Part shown: one piece after another, positions 83 through 49,700 of the stretch
How positions within the stretch are numbered: position 1 is the stretch's first letter
Layout: each line of letters starts with the position of its first letter
Assembly (NCBI GenBank): GCA_965285935.1
Contig: OZ260661.1
Location: forward strand, 146,134,001 to 146,198,000
DNA length: 64,000 bases
Direction: 5' to 3'
Source: Ophelia neglecta
Lineage: Eukaryota
Translations under genes and position numbers: made by a program
Notes under the pieces: model-generated
The model's database searches: none
Seen by the model: the letters and a program-made list of their open reading frames with translations, nothing else
Told to the model about the DNA's origin: nothing

Positions 83-4931
<4,849 letters not shown>

Positions 4932-4975
4932 CTTCCTAGCGGGAAAATACCGGAAGAGGAAATTTCTAGGTGTCA
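4932..4975 (-). promoter_or_regulatory. Probable 5'UTR/core promoter of the SRSF10-like gene with E2F-like (GCGGGAAA) and ETS-like (CCGGAAG) motifs
   Basis: Motifs at 4939-4956 in a locally CpG-rich region; palindromic E-box GTCACGTGAC at 4729-4738 in intron 1. Confidence 0.45.
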
Positions 4976-5741
4976 GGGAAATTTGAAACCAGTATCTTTC
5001 TTCCCTTTGATACTACTTTCTTAAATCATCATTCATTTCGAATAAACACGAAGTATTTGCTGTTGCATGTATTGTATGAATGCAGGGACGTAGCGATTAA
5101 TTGATTCTTTAAATTTACATCTTTCTTTATCTGTTTTAATGTTGCATTTTCATATCTAGTTGTGGTAATTCGAAAATAAATCTTATGGGATGGAGTAAAA
5201 AGTGATAGCTAGGCAGTTATTTAATAGGTTTATCAATTTTGTATCTCATTTATCAAAATTTATTAGAAAATTGACAGATTGCATTCTCCATTTTGTAAAT
5301 CTGATGCCTAAGGGTTTTTGGGAAAAACAGAAGAGACCACACTTAATTATTTAAAAAAAAGAAGAGAATTATCCGAATTAAAAAAAGTATGTCTATGGGT
5401 CCCGAGTTTGGGGGGGGGGGGGGGGGGGAGTGTATAGGGAACAACTTGAAGCGCAGACCAGAAAAGGTCTGCTGCCATGAGAAAAATTGGTCAAAAAGAC
5501 CCCTTGAAATTAAGAGTTTTCTAAAATAACCAAAGGGCTAAAATATCACTCCCAAAATATGAAACCTATAACATATAGATGCCATTTATAGTGTTAAGTC
5601 TATATAATAACTAGAATACACTTAAATCATTATTGTTGAAGTGGTTCTAAGCTAGACTTTTATACCTGAATACCCTACAATACAGTACATGGTAGGGATA
5701 TTTCACCTTGTGTGAAAAGGTAGGTCAAAGATCAAGATAGA

Positions 5742-7859: not shown

Positions 7860-8114
7860 CTAATCCGCAGACTTGTCGTCTGACGGTGTCATGGCCGACT
7901 GGGGCGTCTTTTTGTCCTGATTCCATGGACTGTGTAGAGACGGGCTGCCTTGGAACTGGCCGGCGTTGCTCTGACCTTGGCTGGTGTTCTGGCTATCCTC
8001 CTCCTCTGCTCCGTTAGGTTCAAACTGAGTGTTTTCTAGGCGTGCGATTAGACGTTCATCCTCATCGCCAAACTCCCCTCCCATCAACGTAGGTTCTCCA
8101 ACAACCATCACGTC
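7860..8114 (-). CDS. LDB2: LDB last coding exon, LIM-interaction domain
   Basis: DVMVVGEPTLMGGEFGDEDERLIARLENTQF..., TAG at 7862-7860. Confidence 0.95.
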   Translation of the reverse strand, partial: DVMVVGEPTLMGGEFGDEDERLIARLENTQFEPNGAEEEDSQNTSQGQSNAGQFQGSPSLHSPWNQDKKTPQSAMTPSDDKSAD

Positions 8115-11100
8115 CTGAGATGAAAATAAACAACTTACAATCAATGCAATCTCCTTTCTCATAAAGGTCGTGGGCTGGCAACAGGCAATAATCATATATA
8201 AAAAAATATAATGTTGGAACACGAGCTATATCAAGGAGAGGGTTTATTTTTAAACACTTATTGACATACAGACAGTTATTGTCATCAGGCCTGTAGCCAA
8301 CTTTTTGTTCGTAGGAGTCTGCTTTTTCAGTAATATCAGGGCCTGACATAAATGACTATCTTAATGCAATTAAAGGGAATGAGGGGCAAGTAAATGGGTA
8401 CAAAGGGCAAGTAAAAGGGAACATGGGCCTTATATTTCCCAGCCATTAACATTTGCAGTTTCCGAACTTAAATCATTTGCTGCCCTTTACTTTCGAGGTA
8501 TAGAGGTGCCTACAATTGGTCCATTCAGTGCCCTGATTTTCATGTGCCTTCATATTTCACTGTTTTCATCCCCCTCGGGAAATTGGTAAAATACTGTTTA
8601 TTCGAATCTAAATGACCTTCACATACAGGCACTGGCACTTGTATGTAGGACAATATGTTAGTAGTAGTATATGGCCAAGTGATCTGGGTTATAGTTTGTG
8701 TTTTAGACTATATTAGACTATAGAAGAGGGGATGGTACGTACCCCTGGCACTGGATTGAAGCCCTGCGGCCCGGGGGAGCGTTTCTGTTTGCTCCCAGGT
8801 GGCGTGGTGCTCGCATTCAGGTTGTTTCCGGAGGCGTTGGTGCTCGAAGAGGACTTCCTCTTTCTCCTTTTGTTGGGTTGCCTATTAGTTTCTGCGAGTA
8901 ACAACCAATACATGAAATAATGTCCATATTTCTAAATATTAAATACAATTACTTTTTACCAGTAAAATTATGTATTTCTTAATTTCCAATAAAGATCATA
9001 TTAGTATTTCACAGAAATTGTTAAAGTTGATAGAAATTATAATCTTATAAATAATTCAAATATATAAAGAATTTATTAAATATCAAAATAAACTATAATA
9101 GGATATATCATCTTAAAGTTAATTTGAGCTTATCCTTGGAAAGGAATTAAAAGTAAAAATATATGATAATGTGGTAACATAATGTAGTAACAGAACTTTC
9201 AAAATGATGGTTGTTAGTGCTTCAACCCAAACCAAACAGCTGACACAGGTTGACTACTGGTTTCACACAGCTACCATCATCATCAGATGTCAAAATCACT
9301 TTTATCATCGTCATCATCATCTGGACTGAACCAAACAACACAATATGTGTTCTGTATTAAATCATAAGCTGATCTACAATTTTCTGGATGCCCTCCCCAC
9401 CCCCTCCCTCCTCCTCTGCCCCATACCACCCCCTGCCCCTTCATGCCCTCCCCCCTCCCTCCTCCTCTGCCCCATAACCCCCCTGCCCCTTCATCCCCTC
9501 CCCCCTCCCTCCCTCCTCCTCTGCCCCATAACACCCCCATTGTTCTTTCACCTCCATCACCTCATCTTTTAATCAACAAAAGGTTAGTGGTGAAGTCAGT
9601 CTTTGTATCACCAGCCAACTGCTATGATGGCAACTCTGTGAAACTCATACTGTGAAGTCAAATATTTCATAGGGAATTTTTTCTGCTAATTTCACTATTT
9701 TTTGTTTAGCAAAATTTAAATTTAAGCAAGATATGAAACTGTATAAAGTTATATGCTCTCGAAATCACTTTTTTTTTTAATTTACGAAATTAAATTCCTG
9801 CGAAAATTTCTGACTATACAGAAAGTAACTAATAAACCAGACTCACTAAGTGTTACTAAGTATTACTAAGTGTTACTATGTGTTACTATGTGTTACTATG
9901 TGTTACTACGTGTGAGCCAACTGCACCAAATAATATTAAAGAAATCAAACTTGGTGGACACAGTACACAGAAACTAAAATAAACATGGCGACTATCGCCT
10001 AACAGAGCCATCTAGTGGCCAATGAGCCGTTAACGAGGTGTGAAACAGAAGGGTTAAAAGGTGCGAAAGGAAAGGAAGCGTAACCATGGTAACATGGCCA
10101 CAAAATGGCAGCGACTGGACAATGGGTTATCAGTAGTATATAAATTAAACTGTCTATTGCGTCAGTAAAGGACAAAATCGTAACTCCAATCCTATTATGT
10201 ACACAGTATTAAAGTCCCTATAAATAATTTGAATGTACAGGAGATTTTTAAAGTAGTCCGACTGTATTAAGTTAAGGTAGTCAATTGTTTTAAGATGGCT
10301 GCAGTCGACAATGGTTTTTCAGGGGCCAAAATTTAGAATAAGCATATTCCTATGGAACCTTTCCTAGTTAACAAGCATTAATAGAAGACAATAGGAGATA
10401 ATATTTAGATATTAATCATGCTTTACTGGGCGTGGTTAAATGGCGTCATGACCTATAAATGTGGTAATTTTCATCATTTTCCTTGAAAAAACTTTTTTTC
10501 TTCAAAGACATTGGGTTAGCGAAACTAGTTGCAATTTTTATACGGAGGAAGTTAACATAATCAATGTTAAAGGTAAAAAAGTTAGGAAGACTGTAAATAA
10601 ATGTAGAAAAGGACACAGCGAGGTAAGAAATGCGCATATCTGCCCACAAAGAGGCACCATTTGAGGATAATTATAATTATCTTAAAATTCCTAGCATTAT
10701 TTGGAGAAAAATAACTTGAAGAATCCTGTGTTTCTTGGGTTGAGTGATATGAAATTTAAGTAGGACTTTTTAACTAGTTTCACCAATAGATTGTTTTTGA
10801 AAAAAAGCAATAATGAAAAATGATGCAAAATTATGCCATTGTGAGGTCATGACCCCTTAATGGGTCAGTCCATGGGGTCGTGACCTCATTGACTGACCCC
10901 TTTAGTTTGCAGGATCTATGTCAAATCATTATTCCTAATAGTCTCTTGTTTTAATAATTAAGTCCCATAGGAATCTTAACCTTTCTTAATTATTGTCACT
11001 AAAACTCAAAACTGAAGGGCAGGCTACCTTAAGTTAAGGTAGTCAGACTGTTAAGTTAAGGTAACTGTTTTTTTTTTTTATAACTGATTGCCATTTAAAA

Positions 11101-14100
11101 CATATTAAAGAGGCGTTACTGCTAGACTGTAAGTAGTATATCTAATGTCATTATCCCATACCTTTTCTAGGTGTTACCTCTCAAACCTATAGTTGTCAGT
11201 AGTATGAAAACCCATCCCCCATAGTAGTATAAGTATGGTGGTTCTGTCCTACAGCAAGTCTGGTAAGGGAAAAACCAAATGGAAGCAAACTAAACAGTAT
11301 TAACTCTCTACCTCCCATGCCAAACTTCTCTGACAGACAGCATGGAAGCTAGGCACTGACTGGGGGCTCAGGGGTTAACTACTGGCAGGCCAGCATGTCG
11401 CAGGCGAGTGTGGTGTAGGTTTACAAGAGTCTGGGCAACCTAGCATGGGACTGGCTAGCAGGAGCCTGTGCAGGCCAGGGTGGCACAGGATAGTATTGCA
11501 CAGGCTAGCATGGCACAGGAAAGCATGGCACAGGCTAGCATGGCACAGACCAGCATGGCACAGGCTAGCATGGCACATGCTAGCATGGCACAGACCAGCA
11601 TGGCACAGGTCAGCATGGCACTGGTTAGAAGGAGCCTGCACATGCAGCTTGGCAGAGGCCAGCACGAGTCTGAGCAGGCTAGCATGGCACAGGCTAGCAT
11701 GGCACAGGCTAGCATGGCACAGGCTAGCATGGCACAGGCCAGCCTGGCACAGGCTAGTGTGGCACAGGCCAGCATGGCACAGGCTAGTGTGGCACAGGCC
11801 AGCCTAACACAGGCCAGCATGGCACAGGTTAGTGTGGCACAGGCCAGTATGGCACAGGCTAGTGTGGCACAGGCCAGCATGGCACAGGCTAGTGTGGCAC
11901 AGGCCAGTATGGCACAGGCTAGTGTGGCACAGGCCAGCCTAACACAGGCCAGCATGGCACAGGTTAGTGTGGCACAGGCCAGCATGGCACAGGCCCGCAC
12001 AAAATTGAGCAGGCTGCATGGCACAGGCTAGCATGGCATAGGCCAGCATGGCACAGGACCGCACAAGCCTGAGCAGGCTGCATAGCACAGGCTAGCATGG
12101 CACAGGCCAGCATGGCACAGACCAGTGTAGACTATGGCATGCCAGCAAGCCAATCACAACCTAGCTAGCTCTTCCCGAGGGGGTCCTCGGGGGTGTCACC
12201 TGAACCCAGCGTGTAGGAGAGAGTGGAGGGCATGGTGAAAGACGCAGGCTAGAGTGTGAGGCTGAGTGTAACAAGCCGGCAAGTGACTGCCTAGCGTGAG
12301 GGACATGTCCCCCAGCGGTTGGGGGGGGGGGAGCACTGATATTTACATAGGTAGGCATCTGCCCCCAGAAGGGTCGTTTTGGGGAAATTTTCCTTAATAA
12401 CTTCATAAATTGTCTGGTTATTTGATAATTGCCGAAAGTGCATTTTTTATGTAACAAATAAGATCTTTCTTCCATGTCTAGTGGCCCCTAGCGATAAAAG
12501 ATAAAAACTAGTGTCTAAAACAGCCTCTACCCCTGATATTATTGGCTATACTACTCAATATAGGAAAATATATGCGTTCAAAATTTACACTTATTAAGGG
12601 AGGTTTAGAGGTCTCCGGCAGCACTTACCCATTTAGATTTGGGTCAGTTCCCCCCCCCCCCCCCAATGTAGAAGGAACACATTAAGTTACTAGTGTGGGT
12701 CACAGGGGGGTTTCACTCCTGTAACCCTTCTGAGAGAAGACTTGAAGGGACCAGCAGTAAGTGGTGCTGGACATAGAACTTGCCAGATTGTATGGTGGTT
12801 GTATAATAATGTTAAAGAGGCTTCAGGTTCATGAGAATGGAGATGAGACCTGTGGAGGGGAGGGGATCATATTTCATCTGTCAAGAACTTAGTCCCTTGG
12901 GGAGGCATTTGTATTTCACACCTGATAACTTATCCTATGGGGAGGGCATTGTATTCCAAATAGTGAGAACTACTTCTTATGGGGCAGCGCTTTCGTCCGT
13001 TAATTAAAAGCTGCTATGTTTGGTGAGGGGATGTTATTTCTGCTGTTAAGACACAACTCCCTTTGAGGACAGGATTGTATTTTATCTGCTTAGATACTAC
13101 TCCCTTTAGGGATCATATTGTCTGTTGTCTGCAATGTGAACAGCGAGCTGGTAAAGTGCAGAAGCTATAGCAAACAAAGTGAGGGGCCAGGAGTGAGGCG
13201 AACTAAATGTGTAAACGGAATACGCAGAGCAAAGTCAAGCCACGTGACAGCGAGGCTTATCATAGAACAAGACAACATCAAGTGTACAACACAGGACCCT
13301 TCTCAAGGCTGAGCAGGGGTGTGAGTAGTATTCTCCCCACTACTCAGTAGGGGGAGCTGACCAACACGATCTACAGATAGCCAATCACATGGCACCATTT
13401 CTGGCATCAATCATAATTTGGCCAACCAAACGGCATTATTTCTGGCATAAATCACAGCTTGGCCAACACTAGCACAGTACTTCCGACATTAATTATATGC
13501 AATGCAGTTTGGCCAATCACAATATTCCCGAAATAATTTATTGCTAGCTCGGTTAATTTTGAGGCACTATTTCCAGCATGAAGTTAAACTACCGGTAACC
13601 TAGATTTTCGGGTAATGTTTTTTTCTTGTAGGATAATTCTAGGGCCTTATTTTTTGAATGATTAAATGTGACCAATCACATAGTACAGTTTATTTCTGTA
13701 CTTAAAGCTGGGGAATATATAAACACTGTGGTGCCTTAGAAATGAGTTTGAACAATCTGGTATAGGGTAACAATTTAGGGTCCAAGTACCATGGATTTAT
13801 GAATTAAAAACTGCAATATGGTCATTGTTTACATCAAGGTGTGGTTTTCACAAGGTGTAGACAATAAATGCTGGCTGGCAGCCATTCAGGACTGTCCCTG
13901 CTGCCTCAAACAGCAGATTAAATATAGATATCTTGTATTTAATTAAAGCCCAAACTATTCCTCCCTCATGGACATTTCTAGAACTTAAAGAGATTGTAGA
14001 TACTCGGCTCTCCATCTGAACTGGCAGTCGATTGGACTGGCCTCCAGATAGCTTGACCTTCATTCCAGGAGTGGCTAATGGCCTGTTCTCCACCTCAAAT

Positions 14101-17100
14101 GGAGGTCAAAACATATAACCTCCATCTGAACTGGAGGTCAAAGAGTTTGACCTTCTCCTGGACTGAAGGTCCCAGTCTAACTTGTAAGATTCTTCATAAC
14201 GTGGTTGCTAAGGTCTATCACTGCCTTCTATTACATGTGTTCATGATGTTTCCAGGACATTCAGGGAGGCTGCTTCATATCATGTGGTAGGAACAGCAGT
14301 TAAAATCACCTATTTTAACATCTATTACCATGGAAACCCAGTATGTGAGATAATGATACCATGGAAACCACAGCATTAACCCTGATTACGGATGTCACCC
14401 TGGAAACCAGCCAAGCGGCCCACCCACCCACCACTGGCAACCGCCACCGGCGAGACTAGTTCCTTCTTTGTCCCCCAGAGGGCCAGACTTGCATGCTGTC
14501 GAGCCAGAGATAAAACAGTAGGCGAATACGAACTTCGTCTCCGTCTGCCATCTGTGGCCATGTGACCATCTGAGATCATGTGATCATCTGTGTATTCCTC
14601 ATCATTGTGAGCAGACTCACCCGGCGGCGCCACCATACGCTGCCACTTCTGGAAGAGGGTGGTCTTCAGGCAGTCCCGGGGATTCAGACCGTATGCCTTG
14701 TGACGGGACATCAGCTCCTGCATCGGCTCCAGGATCACACACAACTGGAATAGTATACAGAGAACAAGAGTAGTATATAGAGGATCACACACAACTGGAC
14801 TAGTATACAGAGAACAAGAGTAGTATATAGAGGATCACACACAACTGGACTAGTATACAGAGAACAAGAGTAGTATATAGAGGATCACACACAACTGGAC
14901 TAGTATACAGGGAACAAGAGTAGTATATAGAGGATCACCCACAACTGGACTAGTATACAGGGAACAAGAGTAGTATATAGAGGATCACACACAACTGGAC
15001 TAGTATACAGGGAACAAGAGTAGTATATAGAGGATCACACACAACTGGACTAGTATACAGAGAACAATAGTAGTATATAGAGGATTATGCCCAACTGAAC
15101 TAATACACCGAAGAAAAAAATACCTTGTGAAAGCTAGGATGCTTCAATATCCAAACTTAATCCAAAAATTACCCTTCACATATTGAGTGTGTATAATGTT
15201 AAAAATACCCTGAGAAAGGAGAGTGTGTGATTGGCTAAGTCACAAACTTACCCTGAGAAAGGAGAGTGTGTGATTGGCTAAAACACAAACTTACCCTGAG
15301 AAAGTTGAGTGTGTAATTGGTTAAACCCTGGCGCGTAATGTTTTTGGAGAGCTGCTCCACCATCACTGGATCTTGCTGTAAAATAAAATAAGTCAGACTG
15401 GAAAACTCATTTAGAATTATTAGTGAATGGCTTAGAATATATCCTTGGTGGCCTCATCCATTATTTTCTGACTTTGGTTATGGCCATTAAATCATTTAAA
15501 TTTAGATGTGTATTAGTGGTAAGAAGTAAAAGGTGTGAGCAGTTTGAGTTTTACGTAGTATGAGGTGTGAGTATTACACACCTGAATGGCAATGATACTG
15601 CACGGTATGCATTCCTGGTGCTGCCTGGTTGCAAAGTGACACAAACTTAAGAGTCATGAGTGGTATTAAGAGTTAGTAGTGTACGGTGAGTAGTAGGTAC
15701 CTACACAGCAATGACACTGTAAAGTATGGGTTCCCAGTGCTACCTGGAGGTGAAGTGCCACAAATGCATCAGTCGTGAGTAGTATGAGATGTGAGTAGCA
15801 TCAGATGCGAGTAGTTTGAGGTGTGAGTAGTACATACATGTATGTTGATGACAGTGTGTGGTAGGAACTACTAGTGCTGCCTGGTGACAAAGTGTTTCAC
15901 ATGTATCAGTTCTGAGTAGTATGAAGTGTGTGCAGTATGCAGTGTGAGTAGTACATATCAGCCTGGTGTTGACCCTGTGCAGTGGGAATTCCCAATGCTG
16001 CCTGGTTGCGTAATGCAGGAACAAATCAATCATGAGTGGTATGAGAAGTATAAGATGTGAGTAGTATGAGGTGGGAGTAGTACATACCTGCATGACGATG
16101 ACATTTTGTGGAATGAGTACCCGGTTCTGCCTGGTGGCAAAGTGCCACAAACGTATCAGTCGTGAGTAGTACGAGATGTGAGTAGTATGAGATGTGACTA
16201 TTATGAAGTTTGAGTAATATGTACTTGCATGGCAATGACATTGCAAGGCATGATTTCCTGGTGCTGCCTGGTGGCCAGGTGCTGTGAACATATCATTCGA
16301 TAGTAGTATGAGATGTGAGTAGTATGAGATGTGAGTAGTATGAGATGTGAATAGTATGATATGTTAGTAGTATGAGATGTGAGCAGTATGAGATGTTAGT
16401 AGTATGATATGTGAGTAGAGATGTGAGTAGTATGAGATGTTAGTAGTATAAGATGTGAGCAGTATGCGATGTGGGTGGTAGGAGGTGCGAGTAATACAAA
16501 CCTGCATGGCGATGACACTGCGCGGTATGAGTTCCCGGTGCTGCCTGGTGGCAAAGTGCCACGAACGTATCCTCATCAAGTCATCAAAGGTGAACTCCAG
16601 GATCAAACGACCTTCTGTCACCACCTGACCAGGTCAAAAGTTCAAAGGTTATGAGGTCAATCATTTTTAAAAGGTCAGGTTTAATCCAATATTTTTAAAA
16701 ATTTTACAAAATATACATGTATGACTATGGTCATAACACACAGTCCAGATTTGGATACACACAGCACACTGCTATTTTCTGATTAACACAAATCTGTTAG
16801 ACAGCAGCAAATAAATATATAATAACCTTTGATATGAAATGTCAAGAAAACTGTTAAGATGATCTTCTCAAATTAATGCAAAATTGAAATGTTAAGACAT
16901 CTTCAATTGTTCACCTTCTATGCTGAGTAATGTTGCCATGGTTACATGGTAACCATACTAACATAACTATGTAAACATGGGTTACCATGGCGATAAACCT
17001 TGAATACCATAAGTTACTATGGTGATATATCTGGTGCTATGGTGATATATCTGGTTGGTACCATGGGTAACATGTCTTGGTTACCATGGGTTTCCATGGT

Positions 17101-20100
17101 GTTTTACCCTGGTAACACTGGTCATCCTGGTTACATACCTTGGTGAACATGGGTTTTCCGTGGTGAGTGACCATCAGAGCGTGGTCACTGTCCAACACGA
17201 TGGTGGTGTTATGGAAAGATTCCTTGGTGTGCTTGAGGATGAAGTACAGGTCTGTGACGCCCCCCTCAAAAATACTACGGAAATATCGTGGGATAAGTGT
17301 CCGCCCGATGGCTGAAAATACACAAACATTGTGGTTACCGGATACCTCAGCCACCCTCTCTATATTCAGACCACCTCTATATTCAGACCACCTCTATATT
17401 CAGACCACCTATATATTTAGACTACCTCTATATTCAGTTCACTAATATGGGTGATATATTGCATATTTTAAATGTAAAAATAACCTGCATTGACAGAACA
17501 CCTTTATAATAAGAACCCTGTATTTTCCAGCTCCTTGGGTCTGGGGTGGTCTTAATTCACAGGTTTTATTGTAGTTAAATTGTTATACCTATTTTTGGCT
17601 TTGAGTGATCTTATTTTATTTAAAGAAATAGTTTTTTTTCCAATCCTAACTCTTTTTTATCTAACAAGGTGTTTAGAAATGCAAGCCCCCCACCAATTAA
17701 AAGGGATAGTAAACATGTCTGTCACATAATCACTCTTGGCAAAGTCAAAGCAAGGGTAGGGTCCCCTCCACCCCCCTCTCCACCCCAAGCAATGCCCCCT
17801 CCCCCTCCTCCTTCACAACTCCCTCACTCCATCCCTCGACTGACTCCCTACCCAAGCAATACCCCCCCCCCCAATCCCTCCTCCTTCACAACTCCCTCAC
17901 TCATCCATCCAATACCCCCCCTACCAACCTCTGTATTGTGGGACTAAGAATAATCATAACTGTAAAAATGCCTAATACGTCTAGATGCCCCTGGTATGAG
18001 CAGTATAAGTAGTATATCTATCTGCCCCTCTAGTGGGTCAGGGTTCAGGGTGGATAGTAGTATACTGACTGTATCGTTTAGGACCATCTTCCAGACAAAA
18101 CGATAGCGTCAATGTGGCGTCATCCTCGAAAAATTCTGTTGCAAAAGCGTCCCACCACAGGTTGTCGCTCTCCTGAATCAAATAACATCTAATTAAAATC
18201 TAATTTTCATATCATTTACATATCGTTTACATATCATGTGCATATCATTTGAATATCATTTGCATAACATTAACATATACCAATGGTATACCTGCCACAT
18301 CCCCTCAACATTCCATTTACATATTATATTATTATCATCTCATTATCAAAGTCACTGACAATTCATCAAATTAATATTTTCCCCCATACATATAAACCAA
18401 ACCAAGCCCATTTATATAACTTTGTTTTGTTAATAGAGACGATTTCAATGCCATTTAAATAGTAATAAGGATGTATATAAAGTAGTATATAGTTTGTGGC
18501 CTCAGATAAGTATATAAACCCGGACTACCCAGCCTACCTCAGTTCTCTGCTGCAGCCGCTTGTTGAGCTCAAAGATTCGGTAATCTGGCTGGCCCATGTA
18601 CGGAGTGTGGCGCCTGGAACACAAAACAGGGAATATGATAATATAAAACACAGGCTATGGTAATTAAACATAAAATACGGTAATCTGCCTTAAAGTCACT
18701 TTAAGATTGTAATTGTAACAGAATCAATTACTAGCCTTCTCCTCTTTGCCTTACTAGGCACTCCTCTGGCCAGGCTTTGCCCTTACCAGACCAGGGCAAA
18801 GCCTCGCCAGGCCATGACAGGGCAGGCTCTGCCCTGCAGGATCTACCCTGCAGGCTCAGCCCTGCAGGCTCTGGCTCGCAGGCTCAGCCCCGCAGGCTCT
18901 GCATTGCAGGATCTGCCCTGCCTTTGCCCTGCAGGATAGCCCTGCAGGCTCTGCCCCACAGGCTCTGCCCTGCAGGGCAGACTGCAGGCTCTGCCCTGCA
19001 GGGCAGACTGCAGGCTCTGCACTGCAGGCTCTGCACTGCAGGCTCTGCATTGCAGGATCTGCCCCGCAGGATCTGCCCCGCAGGATCTGCCCCGCAGGCT
19101 CTGCCCCCCAGGATCAGCCCCACAGGCTCTGCATTGCAGGCTCTGCCCTGCAGGATCTCTCCTGCAGGATCTGCCCTGCAGGATCAGCCCCTCAGGCTCT
19201 GCCCCGCAGGATCTGCCCTGCAGTCTACCCTGCAGGCTCTGCCCCTCTGCCCCGCAGGATCTTCCCTGCAGGATCTTCCCCGCAGGCTCTGCCCCGCAGG
19301 CTCTGCCCCGCAGGCTCTGCCCCGCAGGCTCTGCCCCGCAGGCTCTGCCCCGCAGGCTCTGCCCTGCAGGCTAAGCCCTGCCTCTGCCCTGGCTCTTCCA
19401 TACACAATAACTTTCATACCAGATAACATATGCTGCCATGGCTCCATGAAGGTGTTGTACTTTCAGCCCATCTTCCACATACACCTTTTTGCTTGTTTAT
19501 AATGGCTCTTCGTACAGTAAAACAACCAGCTATTCTTATCCAGATAAGACAAAACCTGATGAACACACCACAGAGGTGACTGATCAGTATAGTAGTATAC
19601 TGGGCTGTGAGAGCCCAGTGAGGTGGCCATTACTTTTTTCCAATTGACAGAGATTGATATAATATAAACAGACAAAAGTCTCCGGGGGCCAGCCATAGCA
19701 GATTCTCAAATACTCTAAAGAATATAAGACTGCAACCCTTTCAACTCTGAATATCTGTACCTAAAGGGGTATCTGTCCTCTGTAGAGGGCTGTATTGTGT
19801 GATATCTGTAACTACAGGAGTATCTGCCCTCTGTAGAGGGCTGTAGTGTGTAATATCTGTAACTAAAGGGGCATCTGTCCTCTGTAGAGGGCTGTAGTGT
19901 GTAATATCTGTAACTAAAGGGGTATCTGTCCTCTGTAGAGGGCTGTATTGTGTGATATCTGTAACTAAAGGGGTATCTGCCCTCTGTAGAGGGCTGTAGT
20001 GTGTAATATCTGTATCTAAAGGGGTACCTGTCCTCTGTAGAGGGCTGTAGAATATCTGTGACTAAAGGGGTATCTGCCCTCTGTAGAGGGCTGTAGTATG

Positions 20101-21565
20101 TAATATCAGTAACTAAAGGGGTATCTGCCCTCTGCAGGGGGCTGTAGTGTGTAATATCGGTACCTAAGGGGTATCTGCCCTCTGTAGAGGGCTGTAGTGT
20201 GTATATCTGTAATTAAAGGGGTATCTGCCCTCTGTAGAGGGCTGTAGTGTGTAATATCTGTAACTAAAGGGGTATCTGCCCTCTGTAGAGGGCTGTAGTG
20301 TGTAATATCTGTAACTAAAGGGGTATCTGCCCTCTGTAGAGGGCTGTAGTGTGTAATATCTGTAACTAAAGGGGTATCTGCCCTCTGCAGGGGGGCTGTA
20401 GTTTTGAATGAGTTAAAGCCTTTAGTGTATCATATAGAAGGACACAAATCATGAGCGTTATCATACAGCGTTGGCGCACCCAGGATGAACCAGGGACACC
20501 AACCTCACAGTGTTCAGACTAGGCTCGAGGCTTCATCCCAGAAAAACTCCTCTAGAAAAACAGCAGTCTGGTAGTCATGACAACCTCAATAAGAATGTGC
20601 ACCTAGATATGGGCTTTATGAGGAGAATGTCATGTTAAGTTTTTCTGACCAGAGTCCTGTGATGATTGGCAGGAATGGGAGTCCTTGACTTCTAGGATTC
20701 TAGAGTTGGCTTGAGGGTATTAATAAAATACCTAGAGGGTGCGGGGGCACTGGGGCAAGAGGGTTAAAACTGAGGGGGGGGGGGTGCACCCCTGGGCGAG
20801 AGTGGCCACCCCAGGGCAAGAGGGGGCACTGGGGGGAGGTGGGAAGCATTAAGGCCTGGGGGGCACCTAAAGGCGAGGGAGGTGCTAGGGTGAGGAGGGC
20901 AATGGACTGAGGAGGGGGCACTGGGACAGGGGGGTAACATTGAAAGGGGAGCACTGGGGGCACTCAGGTGGGTGGGGCAGCACTGGGGTGATGGGTGAGC
21001 AGGGGTACTGGGGCAGTGGGTGGAACTGGGGAGGCACCTGCACATTGGAACACACCAGGTGGAGGCACCTGAAGTAGAATGAGGCTCTAGCTTGGGGGCT
21101 TGAGGCTTTGGCCCCCAGACACCAGTTTCCAATGGCTCCCCTCCGAGAGAACCCAAACCCTTCCACAGGAGAGGAGCCACACAGCCCCCCCCCCAACCCC
21201 TACCCCCCCCCCCCCCATTGAAAGTGGCACACCCTCAGTTAAAAAAATTCTGGGAGTGGCAATGGCTACCAATATAAAGGTCCTCAACACAGCTCGGAAA
21301 CAAAATGACTTGCACTACTTACAGTACGCAAACCCTGCCGCTTCCTACGGCAGGGCAAACTATAGAACCTTGGTGAGTAGTACTAGCAGTATTAACAGTA
21401 GGCAAACCACCTACTACTGGCAAAACGGGTCGTTCGCCGTGGAGTGTGTTGATGTAGAGGCATGAACAGTATAGTAGTTTTACTAGTAGTGTATGAGTAG
21501 TATATATACCTGTAGAACTGGGAGAAAGGCGACTGATAGAACGGGTCGTTTGTCAGGGAGTTCAT
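7860..21565 (-). CDS. LDB2: LIM domain-binding protein (LDB2/LDB1/Chip orthologue), about 379 aa; join(21510-21565, 18538-18613, 18070-18172, 17139-17311, 16502-16624, 15295-15375, 14621-14744, 8743-8891, 7860-8114)
   Basis: MNSLTNDPFYQSPFSQFYRRHTPY...DNLWWDAFATEFFEDDATLTLSFCLEDGPKRYTIGRTLIPRYF...EGRLILEFTFDDLMRI...LCVILEPMQELMSRHK...KRRKRK (NLS)...DVMVVGEPTLMGGEFGDEDERLI (LIM-interaction domain). All introns are GT-AG and in phase; total 1140 nt. In-frame upstream Met at 21607 is an alternative start. Confidence 0.95.
8743..8891 (-). CDS. LDB2: LDB exon with NLS (ETNRQPNKRRKRK...PVPG)
   Basis: 149 nt, CGCAG/GTACGT boundaries, phase fits. Confidence 0.9.
9845..9910. repeat. 10-bp tandem repeat (tgttactaag/tgttactatg)
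   Basis: Direct inspection. Confidence 0.85.
10276..11028. mobile_element. Non-autonomous DNA transposon, Kolobok-like (TTAA target)
   Basis: TTAA|GGTAG ... CTACC|TTAA termini; internal inverted motif tgaggtcatgacccc/ggggtcgtgacctca at 10842-10887. Confidence 0.55.
11440..12125. repeat. 15-bp minisatellite (GGCACAGGCTAGCAT)n
   Basis: About 40 units; produces spurious AQASM/AWHRL/ACAML ORFs. Confidence 0.95.
14621..14744 (-). CDS. LDB2: LDB exon (LCVILEPMQE...QRMVAPP)
   Basis: 124 nt, TTCCAG/GTGAGT boundaries. Confidence 0.94.
14731..15100. repeat. 50-bp tandem repeat (7 copies plus 1 degenerate) containing the LDB 3' splice site and first 14 nt of the exon
   Basis: aggatcacacacaactggactagtatacagagaacaagagtagtatatag at 14731, 14781 ... 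15031. Confidence 0.95.
15200..15325. repeat. 43-bp tandem repeat, 3 copies, containing the LDB exon end and donor
   Basis: taccctgagaaag..gagtgtgt.attgg.taa repeated; GT at 15294, 15251, 15208. Confidence 0.9.
15295..15375 (-). CDS. LDB2: LDB exon (QDPVMVEQLSKNITRQGLTNYTLNFLR)
   Basis: 81 nt, TTTTACAG/GTAAGT boundaries; missed by the ORF track. Confidence 0.93.
15545..16500 (-). repeat. About six decayed ~125-bp copies of the 3' half and donor of LDB exon 16502-16624, plus a 15-bp (gagtagtatgagatg)n array
   Basis: Motif tgctgcctggtggcaaagtgccac recurs near 15620, 15740, 15875, 15997, 16128, 16262; best copy translates RLWHFATRQNRVLIPQNVIVMQ|GT. Confidence 0.85.
16502..16624 (-). CDS. LDB2: LDB exon (VVTEGRLILEF...VIAMQ)
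   Basis: 123 nt, CAG/GTTTGT boundaries. Confidence 0.93.
17139..17311 (-). CDS. LDB2: LDB exon (IGRTLIPRYF...GKPMFTK)
   Basis: 173 nt, CAG/GTATGT boundaries. Confidence 0.94.
17357..17437. repeat. 17-bp tandem repeat (cctctatattcagacca), about 4.5 copies
   Basis: Direct inspection. Confidence 0.9.
18070..18172 (-). CDS. LDB2: LDB exon (ESDNLWWDAF...GPKRY)
   Basis: 103 nt, CAG/GTCAGT boundaries. Confidence 0.94.
18538..18613 (-). CDS. LDB2: LDB exon (RHTPYMGQPDYRIFELNKRLQQRTE)
   Basis: 76 nt, CAG/GTAGGC boundaries. Confidence 0.93.
18820..19395. repeat. GC-rich ~14-bp minisatellite (GCAGGCTCTGCCCC/T)n
   Basis: Source of the low-complexity ORFs at 18777-19502. Confidence 0.92.
19750..20400. 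repeat. 51-bp minisatellite, about 12 copies
   Basis: atatctgtaactaaaggggtatctgccctctgtagagggctgtagtgtgta. Confidence 0.95.
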
Positions 21566-21750
21566 GGTGCTCGGGTTGTTTGGCCCGAACTGCGCTCCGT
21601 CCCTCATGAATGCGCCGTGTGGAGCCCCCTGGGGGTGAATCTTGGCGTTTTGTTGGGGAACGAGCGGGGCTTGATTAGAGGAGGGGTGGTCAGGCCCCGG
21701 CTTGGCTGTCCACGGTAGGTTGCCAATGGTTACCAATGTTACTAGAGCAA
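21510..21750 (-). CDS. LDB2: LDB exon with LDB2-like N-terminus (ATG 21607 or 21565)
   Basis: Candidate acceptor TGTCCAG at 21751, DPFYQSPFSQFYR motif, donor AG|GTATAT in phase 2. Confidence 0.8.
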
Positions 21751-32512: not shown

Positions 32513-32952
32513 TTAAGGTGTGTCTATGGGGTACACAGTGTAAGGTGTGTCTATGGGGTACACAGTGTAAGGTGTGTCTATGGGGTACACAGTGTAAGGT
32601 GTGTCTATGGGGTACACAGTGTAAGGTGTGTCTATGGGGTACACAGTGTAAGGTGTGTCTATGGGGTACACAGTGTAAGGTGTGTCTATGGGGTACACAG
32701 TGTAAGGTGTGTCTATGGGGTACACAGTGTAAGGTGTGTCTATGGGGTACACAGTGTAAGGTGTGTCTATGGGGTACACAGTGTAAGGTGTGTCTATGGG
32801 GTACACAGTGTTAGGTGTGTCTATGGGGTACACAGTGTAAGGTGTGTCTATGGGGTACACAGTGTAAGGTGTGTCTATGGGGTACACAGTGTAAGGTGTG
32901 TCTATGGGGTACACAGTGTAAGGTGTGTCTATGGGGTACACAGTGTTAGGTG
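32513..32952. repeat. 24-bp near-perfect minisatellite, 18 copies
   Basis: taaggtgtgtctatggggtacacagtg; gives spurious RCVYGVHSV ORF. Confidence 0.97.
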
Positions 32953-33867: not shown

Positions 33868-34950
33868 GACAACCAGGCTAGGGGTATACATGGGCTGTTA
33901 CCACAGCAACCAGGCTAGGGGTATACATGGGCTATTACCACAGCAACCAGCCTAGGGGTATACATGGGCTGTTACCACAGCAACCAGCCTAGGGGTATAC
34001 ATGGGCTGTTACCACAGCAACCAGCCTAGGGGTATACATGGGCTATTACCACAGCAACCAGCCTAGGGGTATACATGGGCTGTTACCACAGCAACCAGGC
34101 TAGGGGTATACATGGGCTGTTACCACAACAACCAGCCTAGGGGTATACATGGGCTGTTACCACAACAACCAGCCTAGGGGTATACATGGGCTGTTACCAC
34201 AGCAACCAGGCTAGGGGGATACATGGGCTGTTACCACAGCAACCAGGCTAGGGGTATACATGGGCTGTTACCACAGCAACCAGGCTAGGGGTATACATGG
34301 GCTGTTACCACAACAACCAGCCTAGGGGTATACATGGGCTGTTACCACAACAACCAGCCTAGGGGTATACATGGGCTGTTACCACAGCAACCAGGCTAGG
34401 GGGATACATGGGCTGTTACCACAGCAACCAGGCTAGGGGGATACATGGGCTGTTACCACAGCAACCAGGCTAGGGGGATACATGGGCTGTTACCACAGCA
34501 ACCAGGCTAGGGGGATACATGGGCCGTTACCACAGCAACCAGGCTAGGGGTATACATGGGCTGTTACCACAGCAACCAGGCTGGGGGTAACCGTAGGCTA
34601 CCGTATCCTCTGTAGTGAGGCTCAGAGCGCTTAAATAATTATGTGACACAAGATTGCTTAACACGCCAAAAAACCTAGCGAAAAAAGGTCAAATGGTTGG
34701 ATTTTATCAGAAAAAAAGGGGGGCATTAATTACTTACATTCAACTGATTGAATATGGTATAATACCATGACAACCATGCTAGGGGTATACATAGGCTGTG
34801 CTACCAGGACAATCAGGCCAGGGGTAGACATGGGCTATGTTACCATGACAACCAGGCCAGGGGTAGACATGGACTATATTACCATGACAACCAGGCTAGG
34901 GGTAGACATGGGCTATGTTACCATGACAACCAGGCTAGGGGTAGATATGG
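33868..34950. repeat. 32-33-bp minisatellite (accaggctaggggtatacatgggctgttaccacagca), about 21 copies, with diverged copies at 34765-34950
   Basis: Direct inspection. Confidence 0.95.
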
Positions 34951-42770: not shown

Positions 42771-45700
42771 CTGAAAGTATATTATTTCATTCACATGTTT
42801 AGAGTTTAATAAACGGAAAGTTGAGGACGATGTGAAGAGAAAGCATTAGGTACACTATACTAAATTCTTAAAATGGTGTCTTGGATGAACAAGAAGTCTT
42901 AAATAAAGAATTATATCTGTTTATGGTGGGTTGAATGTCTCAATTCATGAAGCTAAGATTATTTGTGTCTGTTATGGGTGAAGTGATAGAGGCAGCAAAT
43001 TATAATGGTATATACCATGGAAGCCCTCAGACCCCTCTATAGCCCTCGGAGCCCGCTATGGCTGGATTGTTATAAAAGCCTTTATGGTACATACGAAGAA
43101 AGCCCTCGGAGCCCTCTATAGCCCTCGGAGCCCGTTATGGCTGGATTATTCCCAAAGGCTTTATGGTACATACCAAGAAAGCCCTCGGACTGTACATTCC
43201 TACAGATTTGATGGTACGTATGCAAACAAGCTAATGATTTTATGGCATTTACATTGACCCTGTCACTAATGTTACAGGTTTTAAAGAACTTACTTTAACC
43301 AGTCTATTATTACAGCATTTAAGGTACTATATTAAAGCTTCTATTATTAGAGGTATTTAAAAATAGCCTAGGTTGACCATATGCTAGAGATATTACCCAC
43401 ATCACAGAGGCATTACCCACATCAAAGAGGTATTACCCATATCACACAGGTATTACCCACACAGTGGTATTACCCATATCACAGAGGTATTACCCACATC
43501 ACAGAGGTATTACCCACATCACAGAGGTATTACCCACATCACAGAGGTATTACCCATATCACAGAGGTATTACCCACATCACAGAGGTATTACCCACATC
43601 ACAGAGGTATTACCCACATCACAGAGGTATTACCCACATCACAGAGGTATTACCCACATCACAGAGGTATTACCCACATCACAGAGGTATTACCCATATC
43701 ACAGAGGTATTACCTATATCACAGAGGTATTACCCACACCACAGAGGTATTACCCACACCACAGAGGTATTACCCATATCACAGAGGTATTACCCACATC
43801 ACAGAGGTATTACCCATATCATAGAGGTATTATCTACATCACAGCGGTATCACAGAGGTATTACCCACATCAAAGAGGTATTACCCATATCACAGTGGTA
43901 TTACACACACAGAGGTATTACCCATATCACAGAGGTATTACCCACATCACAGAGGTATTACCCATATCACAGAGGTATTACCCATATCACAGAGGTATTA
44001 CCCATATCACAGAGGCATTACCCACATCAAAGAGGTATTACCCATATCACAGTGGTATTACACACACAGAGGTATTACCCATATCACAGAGGTATTACCC
44101 ACATCACAGAGGTATTACCCATATCACAGAGGTATTACCCATATCACAGAGGTATTACCCATATCACAGAGGTATTACCCATATCACAGAGGTTTACCCA
44201 TATCACAGAGGTATTACCCATATCACAGAGGTATTACCCATATCACAGAGGTATTACCCATATCATAGAGGTATTACCCATATCACAGGGGTATTACCCC
44301 TATCACAGAGCTATTACCCATATCACAGAGGTATTACCCATATCACAGAGGTATTATCCATATCATGGAGGTATTACCCATATCATGGAGGTATTACCCA
44401 CATCACAGAGGTATTACCCATATCACAGAGGTATTACCCATATCACACAGGTATTACCCATATCACACAGGTATTACCCACATCGCAGAGGTATTACCCA
44501 CATCACAGAGGTATTACCCACACCACAAAGGTATTTCCCACATCACAGAGGTATTACCCACAACACAGAGGTATTACCCACACCACAGAGGTATTACCCA
44601 TATCACAGAGGTATTACCCATATCACAGAGGTATTACCCACATCACAGAGGTATTACCCATACCACAGAGTTATTACCCACATCACAGAGGTATTACCCA
44701 CACCACAGAGGTATTACCCATATCACAGAGGTATTACCCATATCACACAGGTATTACCCATATCACAGAGGTATTACCCATATCACAGCGGTGTTACCCA
44801 TATCACAGAGATATTACCCATATCACAGAGGTATTACCCATATCACAAAGGTATTACCCACATCACAGAGGTATTACCCATATCACAGAGGTATTACAGA
44901 GGTATTACCCATATCACAGAGGTATACCCATATCACAGAGGTATTACCCATATCACAGAGGTATTACCCATATCACAGAGGTATTACAGAGGTATTACCC
45001 ATACCACAGAGGTATTACCCACATCACAAAGGGTATTATCTACATCACAGGGGTACTCACCGATGAAGGCTGTTAGAGCTTCCAGCGAGCCGCTGCCGAC
45101 CAGCTCCTGAACCTTCTGAACCAATCGCTGTTTGTTTTCGTCAGTCATCTCTCGTAATACGCTGATCAGAGATTCGTAGGTTTCCACCGTCTTCAGACCG
45201 ATGAATCCGCCTGGAACACATACAAAGTACATAAAAAGAAGCCCCATTTATTAATTCACACACTTCCCGTTCATATACTTTTACTTAATTTTATCCTGCA
45301 ATAACCAGCACACCTCCATAATTTTGTGTAGTGGAGACAAGGAAAATCTAGTAATTAAATTTATAGCTATATAAGGTACCATTTGCAAACAAATTAACCT
45401 CACAAACTGGACCATGTCATTAAATGCCATGCCATTAAATGACAGTGGTCCCTGCGATGTAGGGCCCCTCCAATGAAGGGCCACCTGCGATGGCAGGACA
45501 GTGGTCCCTGCGATGTAGGGCCCCTCCAATGAAGGGCCACCTTTGATGGCAGGACAGTGGTCCCTGCAATGTAGGGCCCCTCCAATAAAGGGCCGACTGC
45601 GATGGCAGGACAGTGGTCCCTGCGATGTAAGGTCCTTCCAATGAAGGGCCACCTTCGATGGCAGGACAGTGGTCCCTGCAATGTAGGGCCCCTCTAATGA

Positions 45701-46744: not shown

Positions 46745-49700
46745 CACACTTTAAACAGCGCTTTATGCAATAAAATGCTCTAAAGTGCTTTACATAGTCA
46801 TAAAAATATACATTGCACTATTTTTGTTACACGATATAAATTATGGCAGCTTAGATATCACAGGGTAAAAATGAATAAAATTTGAATGAATAAACAATGA
46901 ATAATAATAAAGTATGACTGGGCGTAAAGTGCATTAGGCCTATTTAAGAAAAAGATAAAAGTCAATTTGGGTATGCTAATTTAAAAAGGCAAGTCTTTAG
47001 GTTCTTTTTGAGGGTGCGCATGCGCGGCGGCGGCAAGTTTGGTTTTGAAAACTCTGCTCCTTTATGTTCTGATTTTGACGTTTTTTGTGTGCAGCAGCTT
47101 GATTTAATGTATTGAATTTGTGTCTAAATTACTTGGGAGTATTTCTGTGGTGTCGACTGTGTCATAATTTATCGTAAGATGCCTCCAAAAAGGAATCAAT
47201 CTCAGTCAACGTCAGATGCCTTTGTTCTCGATAAGGTAGAAACGGACGCCATTGTAGAGAAAGCGGTAATGGCGGCCATGGATTCTTATCAACAGTCAAT
47301 AACATCTCTAATCCAGGATAAAATGGAAGCGATGGATGCCAGGGTGACGGCTACGGAAAAAAGCAGTTCTGATGCTATTGCTTCTCTGAAGCAGATGGTT
47401 TCATCTTTATCTGATAGGACAACCAGGCTTGAGGCATGCCTACAGGAAACGCAATCAGACCTCAATGACTTGGAGGGTTGGACCAGGAAGAGCTCCGTGA
47501 GAATCCATGGCCTGGCTGTTAAACCGCAACAATCCTGTGTCCAGGCGTGCTTGACCCTTTTCAACGACACAATGAAGTTGAAAGTTCACGAAAAGGACAT
47601 TGATGTAGCACACATACTTCCCCGCAGCTCTTCGGAGAGAAATCGGAATAGCCCTCCGGTTATAATTTGTAAGTTCATCAAAGTCGCTACAAAATTATAT
47701 GTTCTGAAGGATAGATCAACATTTCTTAAGGACCTGACACCTCACATTCTTATATTCGAGGACATCACCAGGAAAAATTTAAAACTCTTAAAAGATCTTC
47801 GCCAGACTATGATAGACAACCCGGATTCCGCTATCGAGGGTGCCTGGGCCAATAACGGCAAGGTCTTCGTCAAAAGTAAAAAAGACCCAGGTAGGCCCCT
47901 GATCGTTCGGATAACTAACGCGGCTGAAACCATGCAGTCTACGATGCCGTCTTCATACAGCAATGCTTAGGGTTGGTTTACTCGTGGTTATGTTGCCTAC
48001 ACTTTGTGTCATTATAAATTGTCCTTGTATCTGCTTTAATGAAATTTGGACATTTGTCACCTACTGGGTCTGTATGATTCACGAGTATCCTAATTTGCCT
48101 ACACTTTAATTCCTCACATACACCTATACAGATGGTATTATATGTCACTTTGTGCATAGCGTTATTCGGTGGGAGGCAAGTAGATTTTATGTGTGTTTGT
48201 ACATGGTTCTTGACCCTTGCTTGAGACTCTTGTACACTAGCGTTGTGTTGTTGAAGGGCGGCAGTCTTGCACAATTATTTGCTCGGCATGCCTTTGTATA
48301 CTGCCGTACTTGAAGTATCCTTGTTAACTTTGACCAGTCACAACGCGTATACATTGGACACAATGTCAGTTATGTAATGTATTTATTTATGTCTTGTCCT
48401 GCTGCACTACCATGCTTTGCAAGAGATTCAACTGTATGTATTTCTATTTTTTTATATTTTATACTTTTTTGCACGTTTTCATCACCCATGTCTGCTCCAT
48501 TCTAGTCCTATTTTGTGTGATCCAGCGGCGGGATGTGAAGGTATGTCATTACTTCACACGTTTGTACGATGACTTGTTATTGTAATGGTTGTAAGAGACG
48601 TGTGTTATCTCACTCTTGCTACATCATATGTTCCATATGCAGCGGCTATTATCATGTACAGTGTTTGCCAATGGTTTCAAAAACGGACAGTATTGTTTTA
48701 AACAGAAATAACCAGGAATGGATATGCATTTGCTGCTCTGAAACATTGTTCCCTTTTAACCACGTTTCTGATGACACCGAGTTTTATGCTGCCATTAAGG
48801 ATTCTTGTAATATCGATACTTCTCTCTCTCTCAGAGACCTGGAAGATAAATGGTTCAATCCCTTTGATATAAATGAACATGACTTAAATTCCCCTCTCTC
48901 TGATGCAGACCCTGATATACAATATTTTAACGAAAATCAAAACTGTTGCATCAGTGACTACTATTTAGAAGATTGATTCAATCAGCAGCTCTCTCAATTG
49001 CAGGTTGATCCTAATTGTTTCTCTTTGATTCATATTAACATACGCAGCATCCCTAAGAATCTAGATAAGCTTTCTGTATACCTGGATAACTTCGATTTTA
49101 AATTTGGCATGATTGGAATAACAGAGACTTGGCTGAAACATTCTACTGCAGCTTATTACAACATGGAGGGTTATAATCATGAGTTCACTTGTAGAGACAG
49201 TAAGGTGGGTGGTGGCGTATCTTTGTATTTACGCGACTCCATTGTATATAGTACTCGTGCTGATTTGATTTGCAATAACGGGAATATTGAGAGTTTATTT
49301 GTTGAGGTTCAAAAAGATTCTTTTTTTAAAGGGAAAAATGTTATAGTTGGGGTCGTGTATCGACCTCCTAATACAGATGTTAGCTTGTTTAATAACCATG
49401 TACAGGATATATTAGCAAAAATTCGACAGGAAAATAAGATAGCCTATTTGACTGGTGACTTCAATATTAACTTGCTTAACGTTGATAAGCATATCCCTTC
49501 ATCTGAATTTTTGGAAGCTATGTACTCCCACTCTTTTTTGCCCCTCATTAATAAGCCAACCAGGGTTAATTTACAATCTGCTACCCTTATTGATAACATT
49601 TTCTGTAACAACTTTCATCAGGGTCCTAACAATATGTTTCAGGGTATTTTGTTCACTGGGATCTCTGATCACTTTCCCATTTTTTGTCTCGATATGTCAC

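Follow-up and report, generated by a model that had tools for sequence, protein, structure and literature searches.

Tandem arrays at four consecutive exons of an LDB gene in Ophelia neglecta are probably ordinary intronic minisatellites that reach splice junctions by chance

We analyzed a stretch of 64,000 nucleotides from the 762-Mb genome assembly of Ophelia neglecta (G000:C1:146134001-146198000; "the window" below means this whole stretch). A gene for a LIM-domain-binding (LDB) protein lies on its minus strand, at about 7.86 to 21.6 kb of the window, with coding exons E1 to E9. At four consecutive exons of this gene there are tandem arrays, and each of them includes 14-87 nt of exon end together with the splice site (Table 1). 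We think that the four arrays are probably intronic minisatellites of the ordinary kind, in a part of the chromosome that is unusually rich in repeats, and that in each case the first duplicated segment happened to straddle a junction. The key observation is that the junctions of this gene have nearby copies at the same rate as the rest of its introns do.

Four arrays of exon-end sequence within introns

The array at the acceptor of E7 (array 1) is the youngest. Tandem Repeats Finder (TRF) reports it at 14731-15085, with a period of 50, 7.1 copies, 98% matches, and a score of 668, and alignment adds a diverged eighth copy at 15081-15130. Each repeat unit carries the 14 nt that open E7, preceded by the AG and a polypyrimidine tract, so that the authentic acceptor has seven to eight decoys upstream of it. 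Array 2, at the donor of E6, is reported by TRF at 15206-15325 (period 43, 2.8 copies, 92%), with a faint fourth copy at 15154-15196. The unit holds about 31 nt of the end of E6, the donor, and 12 nt of intron, and in the first decoy the donor sequence is identical to that of the authentic donor.

The other two arrays are older. Array 3 has six decayed copies of the end of E5 (16212-16294, 16071-16157, 15942-16033, 15821-15907, 15688-15770, and 15565-15649), spaced by 121-141 bp. Each holds the last 70-87 nt or so of E5 with the donor, at 72-86% identity to the authentic end. The GT is kept in five of the six, 16-bp sub-repeats are interleaved with them, and tblastn still detects three of the copies as pseudo-exon matches. 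In array 4, the clearest echo of the E4 end is at 17056-17108 (aligned to 17119-17172); it is about 75% identical and has lost the donor GT. Weaker copies of about 63 bp extend back to about 16923.

Taken as TRF calls, the head-to-tail arrays inside these introns are 50 bp x 7.1, 43 bp x 2.8, and 137 bp x 2.2, in addition to the six spaced copies. Both the alignments and the pseudo-exon matches from tblastn show that the terminal units cross the exon-intron boundary, with exon-end sequence and splice site inside the unit. Array 1 has diverged by about 2% and array 2 by 7-14%; for arrays 3 and 4 the figure is 14-28% or more. Because the ages of the arrays spread from about 2% to over 25% divergence, duplication must have gone on for a long time rather than in a single event.

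To quantify these similarities, we took the 50 nt around each junction, with the junction in the middle, aligned them locally to the neighboring 1 kb of intron, and used the best alignment as an echo score. The array junctions score 37, 35, 33, and 21, whereas none of 500 shuffles exceeded 19. The remaining 12 junctions of the LDB gene score 8-12. The exons themselves are intact: just 45 of 1215 exon nucleotides lie inside TRF arrays, all of them at the two young junction arrays.

A preliminary description of this stretch had reported most of these features. The exon ends it named (14744, 15295, 16502, and 17139) are exactly the acceptor of E7 and the donors of E6, E5, and E4. We also recovered its seven- to eightfold amplification of the E7 acceptor in 50-bp units, its tripled E6 donor in 43-bp units, its roughly six decayed copies of the 3' part of E5 with the donor, and its degenerate echo of the E4 end. 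Its statements that the coding exons are left whole, and that the arrays make introns longer and add rows of decoy splice sites to them, hold up as well.

Junctions are not enriched for arrays

The preliminary description went further and proposed that the arrays are nucleated on splice junctions. The window, however, is simply very rich in repeats. With standard settings, TRF arrays cover 17.9% of the window, versus 1.4% of 260 kb from 74 other loci. Within the LDB gene, the cover is 24.3% for introns and 3.7% for exons, and the exon share consists of the junction overlaps only. (Much of the non-coding sequence is taken up by very long minisatellites, the largest of which reaches 1.7 kb; they lie at 43372-45107, 33870-34589, 32514-32952, 19750-20402, 18822-19381, and 11481-12120. 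TRF cover per 4 kb ranges from 1% to 46%.)

Against this background, the junctions do not stand out. Four of the 16 LDB junctions (25%) have a local echo, versus 28-30% of random 50-nt windows from the introns of the same gene (using a score threshold of 18-20). At the intronic rate, the binomial probability of four or more junction echoes is 0.70. We also shuffled the positions of the gene's TRF arrays (15 in all) 20,000 times. On average 3.17 junctions were covered, and two or more were covered with P = 0.83; two are covered in the actual sequence. The overlap of arrays with junctions within the LDB gene is thus below the mean for shuffled placement, and nucleation on junctions is not supported.

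Genes with fewer repeats gave no sign of a junction effect either. In the neighboring SR-protein gene, none of five junctions has an echo (the background rate is 3%). In myosin and dynein genes (44 loci on other chromosomes), none of 48 junctions lies in an array or has an echo, at a background echo rate of 3.7% and a TRF cover of 1.4%. (These 48 junctions were predicted from Pfam matches to Myosin_head and Dynein_heavy; the matches to Pkinase are mostly intronless and could not be used for junctions.) For the three sets of junctions together, we observed four echoes, and about 6.4 were expected.

Two other features of the arrays are relevant. The exon share of the unit differs from array to array (14, about 31, about 75, and about 33 nt), so there is no fixed geometry. 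Also, about 50 of the 54 arrays in the window do not touch any known exon. Given that the echo rate at the junctions equals the intronic rate in the LDB gene, the arrays look like the outcome of ordinary local minisatellite turnover rather than of a mechanism that seeks junctions.

Local duplication in short introns

If junctions are not preferred, then why do four consecutive exons have arrays, and why does each array grow into the intron? We infer the following mechanism. Local tandem duplications would arise by replication slippage, template switching, or unequal exchange. If a duplication crosses a junction, the edge copy of the array would stay joined to the exon and the other copies would fall in the intron. 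Such a duplication would be tolerated as long as the spliceosome keeps to the outermost, authentic site, and duplications that lie wholly within exons would be removed by selection. Array growth is always into the intron because the edge copy keeps the exon whole. This is a logical necessity and gives no clue about the mechanism.

The preliminary description had suggested duplication at junctions combined with a filter of selection. The filter fits our results, in that the TRF cover of introns and exons is as expected if exon-disrupting repeats are removed, but the association with junctions is the part that we could not support.

The lengths of the introns may explain the run of four. The intron between E6 and E7 measures 550 nt, and TRF array makes up 78% of it; of the 1126 nt between E5 and E6, about 940 nt fall within the span of array 3; and array 4 accounts for about 215 of the 514 nt between E4 and E5. 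After subtracting the array-derived sequence, the three introns were originally short, at roughly 150-300 nt. By counting start positions, we found that 34-68% of the duplications that spare the exon interior would span a junction (for a segment of 43-130 nt and an intron of 200-300 nt). Since the affected introns were short, tolerated duplications would often span a junction, and this may account for four in a row.

The richness in repeats may itself be regional. It is plausible that the window belongs to a distal, minisatellite-rich domain of the chromosome. Blocks of TTAGGG-type repeats occur every 2.4 kb or so at C1:148969430-148979085, which is 2.8 Mb beyond the window and includes the highest coordinates that we saw on this contig. 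Their G-rich strand is on the minus strand, unlike the orientation expected of a terminal telomere at the right end, and the blocks may be an interstitial or subtelomeric satellite.

Decoy splice sites

The arrays leave decoy donors downstream of the authentic donors and, at E7, decoy acceptors on the upstream side of the real one. Each unit of array 1 would add 50 nt if it were used, and every reading that begins at a decoy acceptor meets a stop codon within 15-20 codons. The authentic E7 acceptor (window 14745-14750) reads TATTCCAG, while the seven decoys and the old outer copy (up to 15130) read TAGTCCAG or TAGTTCAG. In other words, the authentic acceptor has T instead of G at position -6, as compared to all of the decoys, and this abolishes a TAG just upstream of the AG. 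The T is a single base, but it would fit with selection on the real site.

A core motif in some of the arrays

An 8-mer recurs in this part of the window. Its sense form for the two minus-strand genes is ATACTACT, or AGTAGTAT on the plus strand, and the window has 42 plus-strand copies and five minus-strand copies (about 16 independent clusters versus 4). All but one of the plus-strand copies are in the first 22.4 kb (1126-22358). The motif lies 4-14 nt into the introns that follow E1, E3, and E5. We take it to be the exact complement of the GUAGUAU branch-recognition box of U2 small nuclear RNA.

Arrays 1 and 3 share a core of 13-14 nt around ATACTACT with arrays of different period at other loci. 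Minisatellites that have a core of 7-14 nt in common with arrays 1 and 3, and are otherwise unrelated, are present on other chromosomes at L002:1499-1585, L003:1497-1632, and L004:1485-1761 (periods 16, 17, and 40) and at L005:1501-1841, L006:1022-1810, and L077:1-671 (periods 25, 24, and 27). L002 to L006 were found by similarity; L077, whose core is TACTACT, is an unselected locus. The common core resembles a minisatellite core sequence.

We considered two other roles for these sequences and rejected both. If ATACTACT were a general signal on the sense strand of introns, it should be biased in other genes as well, but in 182 kb of other oriented gene loci there is no strand bias (10 sense versus 9 antisense copies) and the frequency is near chance. 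The array units do not appear to be a dispersed mobile element: a search of the same genome returned the locus itself and weak matches, of 67-80%, to arrays that share the core.

Alternative explanations

Could some process tied to junctions, such as repair linked to splicing or to R-loops, preferentially start tandem duplications at splice junctions across the genome? The run of four junction arrays at consecutive exons is what such a process might produce, and the orthologous contig of a related animal has a 30-nt copy (28/30 identical) of sequence from inside E4, in the intron just downstream. Yet the LDB junctions do not exceed their intronic background, none of the 5 and none of the 48 junctions of genes with a 3-4% background have echoes, the exon share of the unit varies, and most arrays in the window are away from known exons. 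We consider a junction-linked process to be unlikely, and nothing in the low-repeat genes or in the placement of the junction within the units calls for the splicing- or R-loop-linked mechanism that had been suggested. It is also doubtful that the core motif promotes the birth of arrays, with junctions being reached only where the motif adjoins one. In its favor, the units of arrays 1 and 3 contain the motif, which is also close to the donors of E1, E3, and E5; it is strongly biased in strand and nearly confined to 1.1-22.4 kb; arrays elsewhere with periods of 16, 17, 24, 25, 27, 36, and 40 share the 13-14 nt around it; and TACTAC or GTAGTA is found in 9 of the window's 54 arrays. On the other hand, the motif is missing from arrays 2 and 4 and from most of the others, L002 to L007 were retrieved by similarity and hence were selected for it, and in the other oriented loci its frequency is close to chance and its strands are balanced. 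The broader proposal, that the birth of minisatellites in this genome is directed by ATACTACT, with a sense bias of about 8:1 in the region of the LDB and SR-protein genes and near three 5' splice sites, seems quite improbable to us. If the core did mark a site of breakage or template switching that is coupled to transcription or splicing, then arrays would be seeded near the 5' splice sites of some genes, and this would be a real junction-linked mechanism that is hidden behind the background.

The decoys might instead be functional, either by tuning the dosage of LDB through regulated unproductive splicing or by clustering binding sites for splicing regulators. The early stop after every decoy acceptor would suit this, as would the T at -6, which removes the upstream TAG from the authentic E7 acceptor alone, and YCAY-like and branch-site-like words are densely packed in the 16-bp sub-array. 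But the arrays decay as neutral sequence does (identity is down to 72-86%, and some copies no longer have the GT), and similar arrays are found throughout the surrounding non-coding sequence, so a function for the decoys is very unlikely. Least of all do we believe that the repeats were mis-assembled or collapsed. Such arrays are hard to assemble, and the window does have a gap of 355 Ns (at about 29.2-29.4 kb). However, substitutions are distributed among the copies in an ordered way, some private and others shared (one variant is common to units d3-d5 of array 1). In addition, divergence reaches 14-28% in arrays 3 and 4, and both exons and reading frames are intact.

We therefore return to chance duplication across junctions in a repeat-rich stretch. 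Several points weigh against this explanation. The samples are small (16, 5, and 48 junctions), and a genome-wide enrichment of less than about 2-fold would be compatible with the data. At E5, the authentic donor (GTTTGT) seems to be a poorer site than the consensus donor of the copies (GTATGT); a real donor that is weaker than some of its decoys is contrary to what simple purifying selection predicts. The exclusive use of the authentic splice sites is something that we infer. Finally, the core that is common to two of the four arrays and to unrelated arrays elsewhere hints at a sequence-dependent component in the birth of arrays.

Duplications near these exons in other animals

The copy in the orthologous contig involves L082:313-342 and 463-490, on a marine metagenome scaffold with an ortholog of E4. 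The exon-internal copy is 150 nt downstream of the original, in the intron. It is a short local templated copy, not an array. In LDB gene models from other species, we saw either a tandem repeat of 7 residues (21 nt) that is read straight from the donor of the E7 equivalent or an E5-equivalent exon that appears twice. (The models are P0026, residues ~259-295; P0102, residues 78 and 119; and P0063, residues 117 and 302.) These models indicate that local duplication near these exons is not limited to this genome.

The LDB gene and its neighbors

We identified the LDB exons by exon-by-exon searches, which yielded the full-length LDB proteins P0026, P0032, and P0080; tblastn with these proteins finds the conserved exons on the minus strand. 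We ran Pfam scans on single exons, one at a time, and read the splice sites directly from the sequence. LIM_bind (PF01803) matches E3, E4, and E5 in a colinear way (profile positions 18-54, 57-106, and 117-148), and LID, the LIM interaction domain (PF17916), matches E9 with E = 5.9e-13. With both the LIM_bind core domain and the C-terminal LIM interaction domain present, the predicted product belongs to the LDB/CLIM/Chip family.

The boundaries of E4 are identical in exon-sized open reading frames (ORFs) of other animals, and the ortholog in L082 has the same acceptor and donor positions, so the introns on either side of E4 are old. The closest LDB matches, which as transcripts could have confirmed the splicing, are exon-sized ORFs on genomic or metagenomic contigs.

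Table 1. Coding exons of the LDB gene and the arrays at its splice junctions (positions within the window)
Feature	Position	Strand	Evidence and remarks
LDB E9, last coding exon, with LIM interaction domain	7860..8114	-	tblastn, Pfam LID; no junction echo
LDB E8, basic and Ser-rich linker	8743..8891	-	no junction echo
LDB E7 (LCVILEPMQELMSRHKAY...)	14621..14744	-	acceptor AG 14745-14746; tblastn, sequence, translation
Array 1, 50-bp unit x 7.1 and diverged 8th copy	14731..15130	-	TRF, alignment
Array 2, 43-bp unit x 2.8 (92%) and weak 4th copy	15154..15325	-	TRF, alignment
LDB E6 (QDPVMVEQLSKNITRQGLTNYTLNFLR)	15295..15375	-	donor GT 15293-15294; tblastn, translation
Array 3, six decayed copies of E5 end and donor	15560..16501	-	TRF, tblastn, alignment
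16-bp sub-array (sense CATACTACTCACATCT) x 12.2	16302..16493	-	TRF; between authentic E5 donor and first decoy copy
LDB E5 (VVTEGRLILEFTFDDLMRIRSWHFATRQHRELIPRSVIAMQ)	16502..16624	-	donor GT 16500-16501; tblastn, Pfam, translation
Array 4, decayed ~63-bp repeats from last ~33 nt of E4 and donor	16923..17138	-	echo score, alignment
LDB E4 (IGRTLIPRYFRSIFEGG...KPMFTK)	17139..17311	-	donor GT 17137-17138; tblastn, Pfam
LDB E3	18070..18172	-	tblastn, Pfam LIM_bind; no junction echo
LDB E2	18538..18613	-	tblastn; no junction echo
LDB E1, first coding exon	21510..21640	-	donor 21510 exact, 5' limit approximate; no junction echo

The neighboring gene, at 83-5012 of the window and also on the minus strand, encodes an SR protein (similar to SRSF10), with a match to RRM_1 on the exon at 2259-2363. 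Its intron at 991-2258 has the look of a U12-type AT-AC intron, with 5' ATATCCTTT and CCTTAAC 8 nt before the 3' AC. On the plus strand, at 48977-52808, there is a retroelement of the LINE (long interspersed nuclear element) type, with one ORF that has an Exo_endo_phos endonuclease and a second ORF that matches RVT_1 (E = 4.5e-33). Elsewhere in the genome, the Pkinase matches include large clusters of near-identical, apparently intronless genes for protein-kinase domains, with open frames of about 285-390 amino acids, at C1:135.9-140.5 Mb, C5:111.3-115.9 Mb, and C9:15.8-19.8 Mb.

Implications and comparison with known systems

The LDB arrays do not reveal a new mutational mechanism. What the locus offers is a view of intron lengthening in progress, by duplication of the intron's own edges, and rows of 3-8 decoy donors or acceptors beside the authentic sites in the gene for a dosage-sensitive developmental cofactor. 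This makes it a substrate for studying the rules of splice-site choice outside of mammals, both the first-come choice of 5' sites and the choice of acceptor among identical units of branch site, tract, and AG. A practical concern is that gene predictors may choose decoy sites in such introns.

The closest known case is in human F7, where the first unit of a 37-bp variable number tandem repeat (VNTR) in intron 7 (IVS7) spans the boundary of exon 7 (Borensztajn et al. 2006, PMC1557585). The pseudo-donors in this VNTR are functional but silent in minigenes, because the most upstream site is chosen (PMC1557585). Arrays 2, 3, and 4 have the same arrangement, in which pseudo-donors that are identical or nearly so line up in the intron downstream of the authentic donor. 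Since the LDB arrays share this architecture, they are a structure of a known kind. Unlike F7, which has one array in one human gene, the LDB gene has four arrays in one invertebrate gene, one of which multiplies an acceptor.

Internal tandem repeats at exon-intron boundaries are also known from human genes in segmental duplications, with 27 curated intron modifications (De Grassi and Ciccarelli 2009, PMC2812944). Like the LDB arrays, those repeats straddle exon-intron boundaries and alter intron structure. However, they often change splicing or create introns in young paralogs (PMC2812944), while in the LDB gene old introns are only lengthened and the coding sequence is unchanged.

Tandem genomic duplication can also yield new introns, according to the AGGT model (as presented in a review, PMC3443670, which cites Hellsten 2011 and Gao and Lynch 2009). 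The model resembles the LDB case in that a local tandem duplication multiplies splice-site sequence and leaves the protein unaffected as long as splicing uses the outer sites. It differs in that the LDB gene has no new intron, as the duplicated segment already holds an existing junction. We considered intron gain for the LDB gene and rejected it, given that E4 has the same boundaries in the ORFs of other animals and in the L082 ortholog.

The regional abundance of minisatellites has a parallel in the subtelomeric enrichment of VNTRs in the human genome (PMC7608644). The window is similarly rich in minisatellites and lies 2.8 Mb from telomere-type blocks. Unlike human subtelomeres, it belongs to an invertebrate and is placed only relative to the highest coordinates seen on its contig. 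Overall, the LDB gene is unusual among these systems only in having four arrays in one gene, with one of them on an acceptor.

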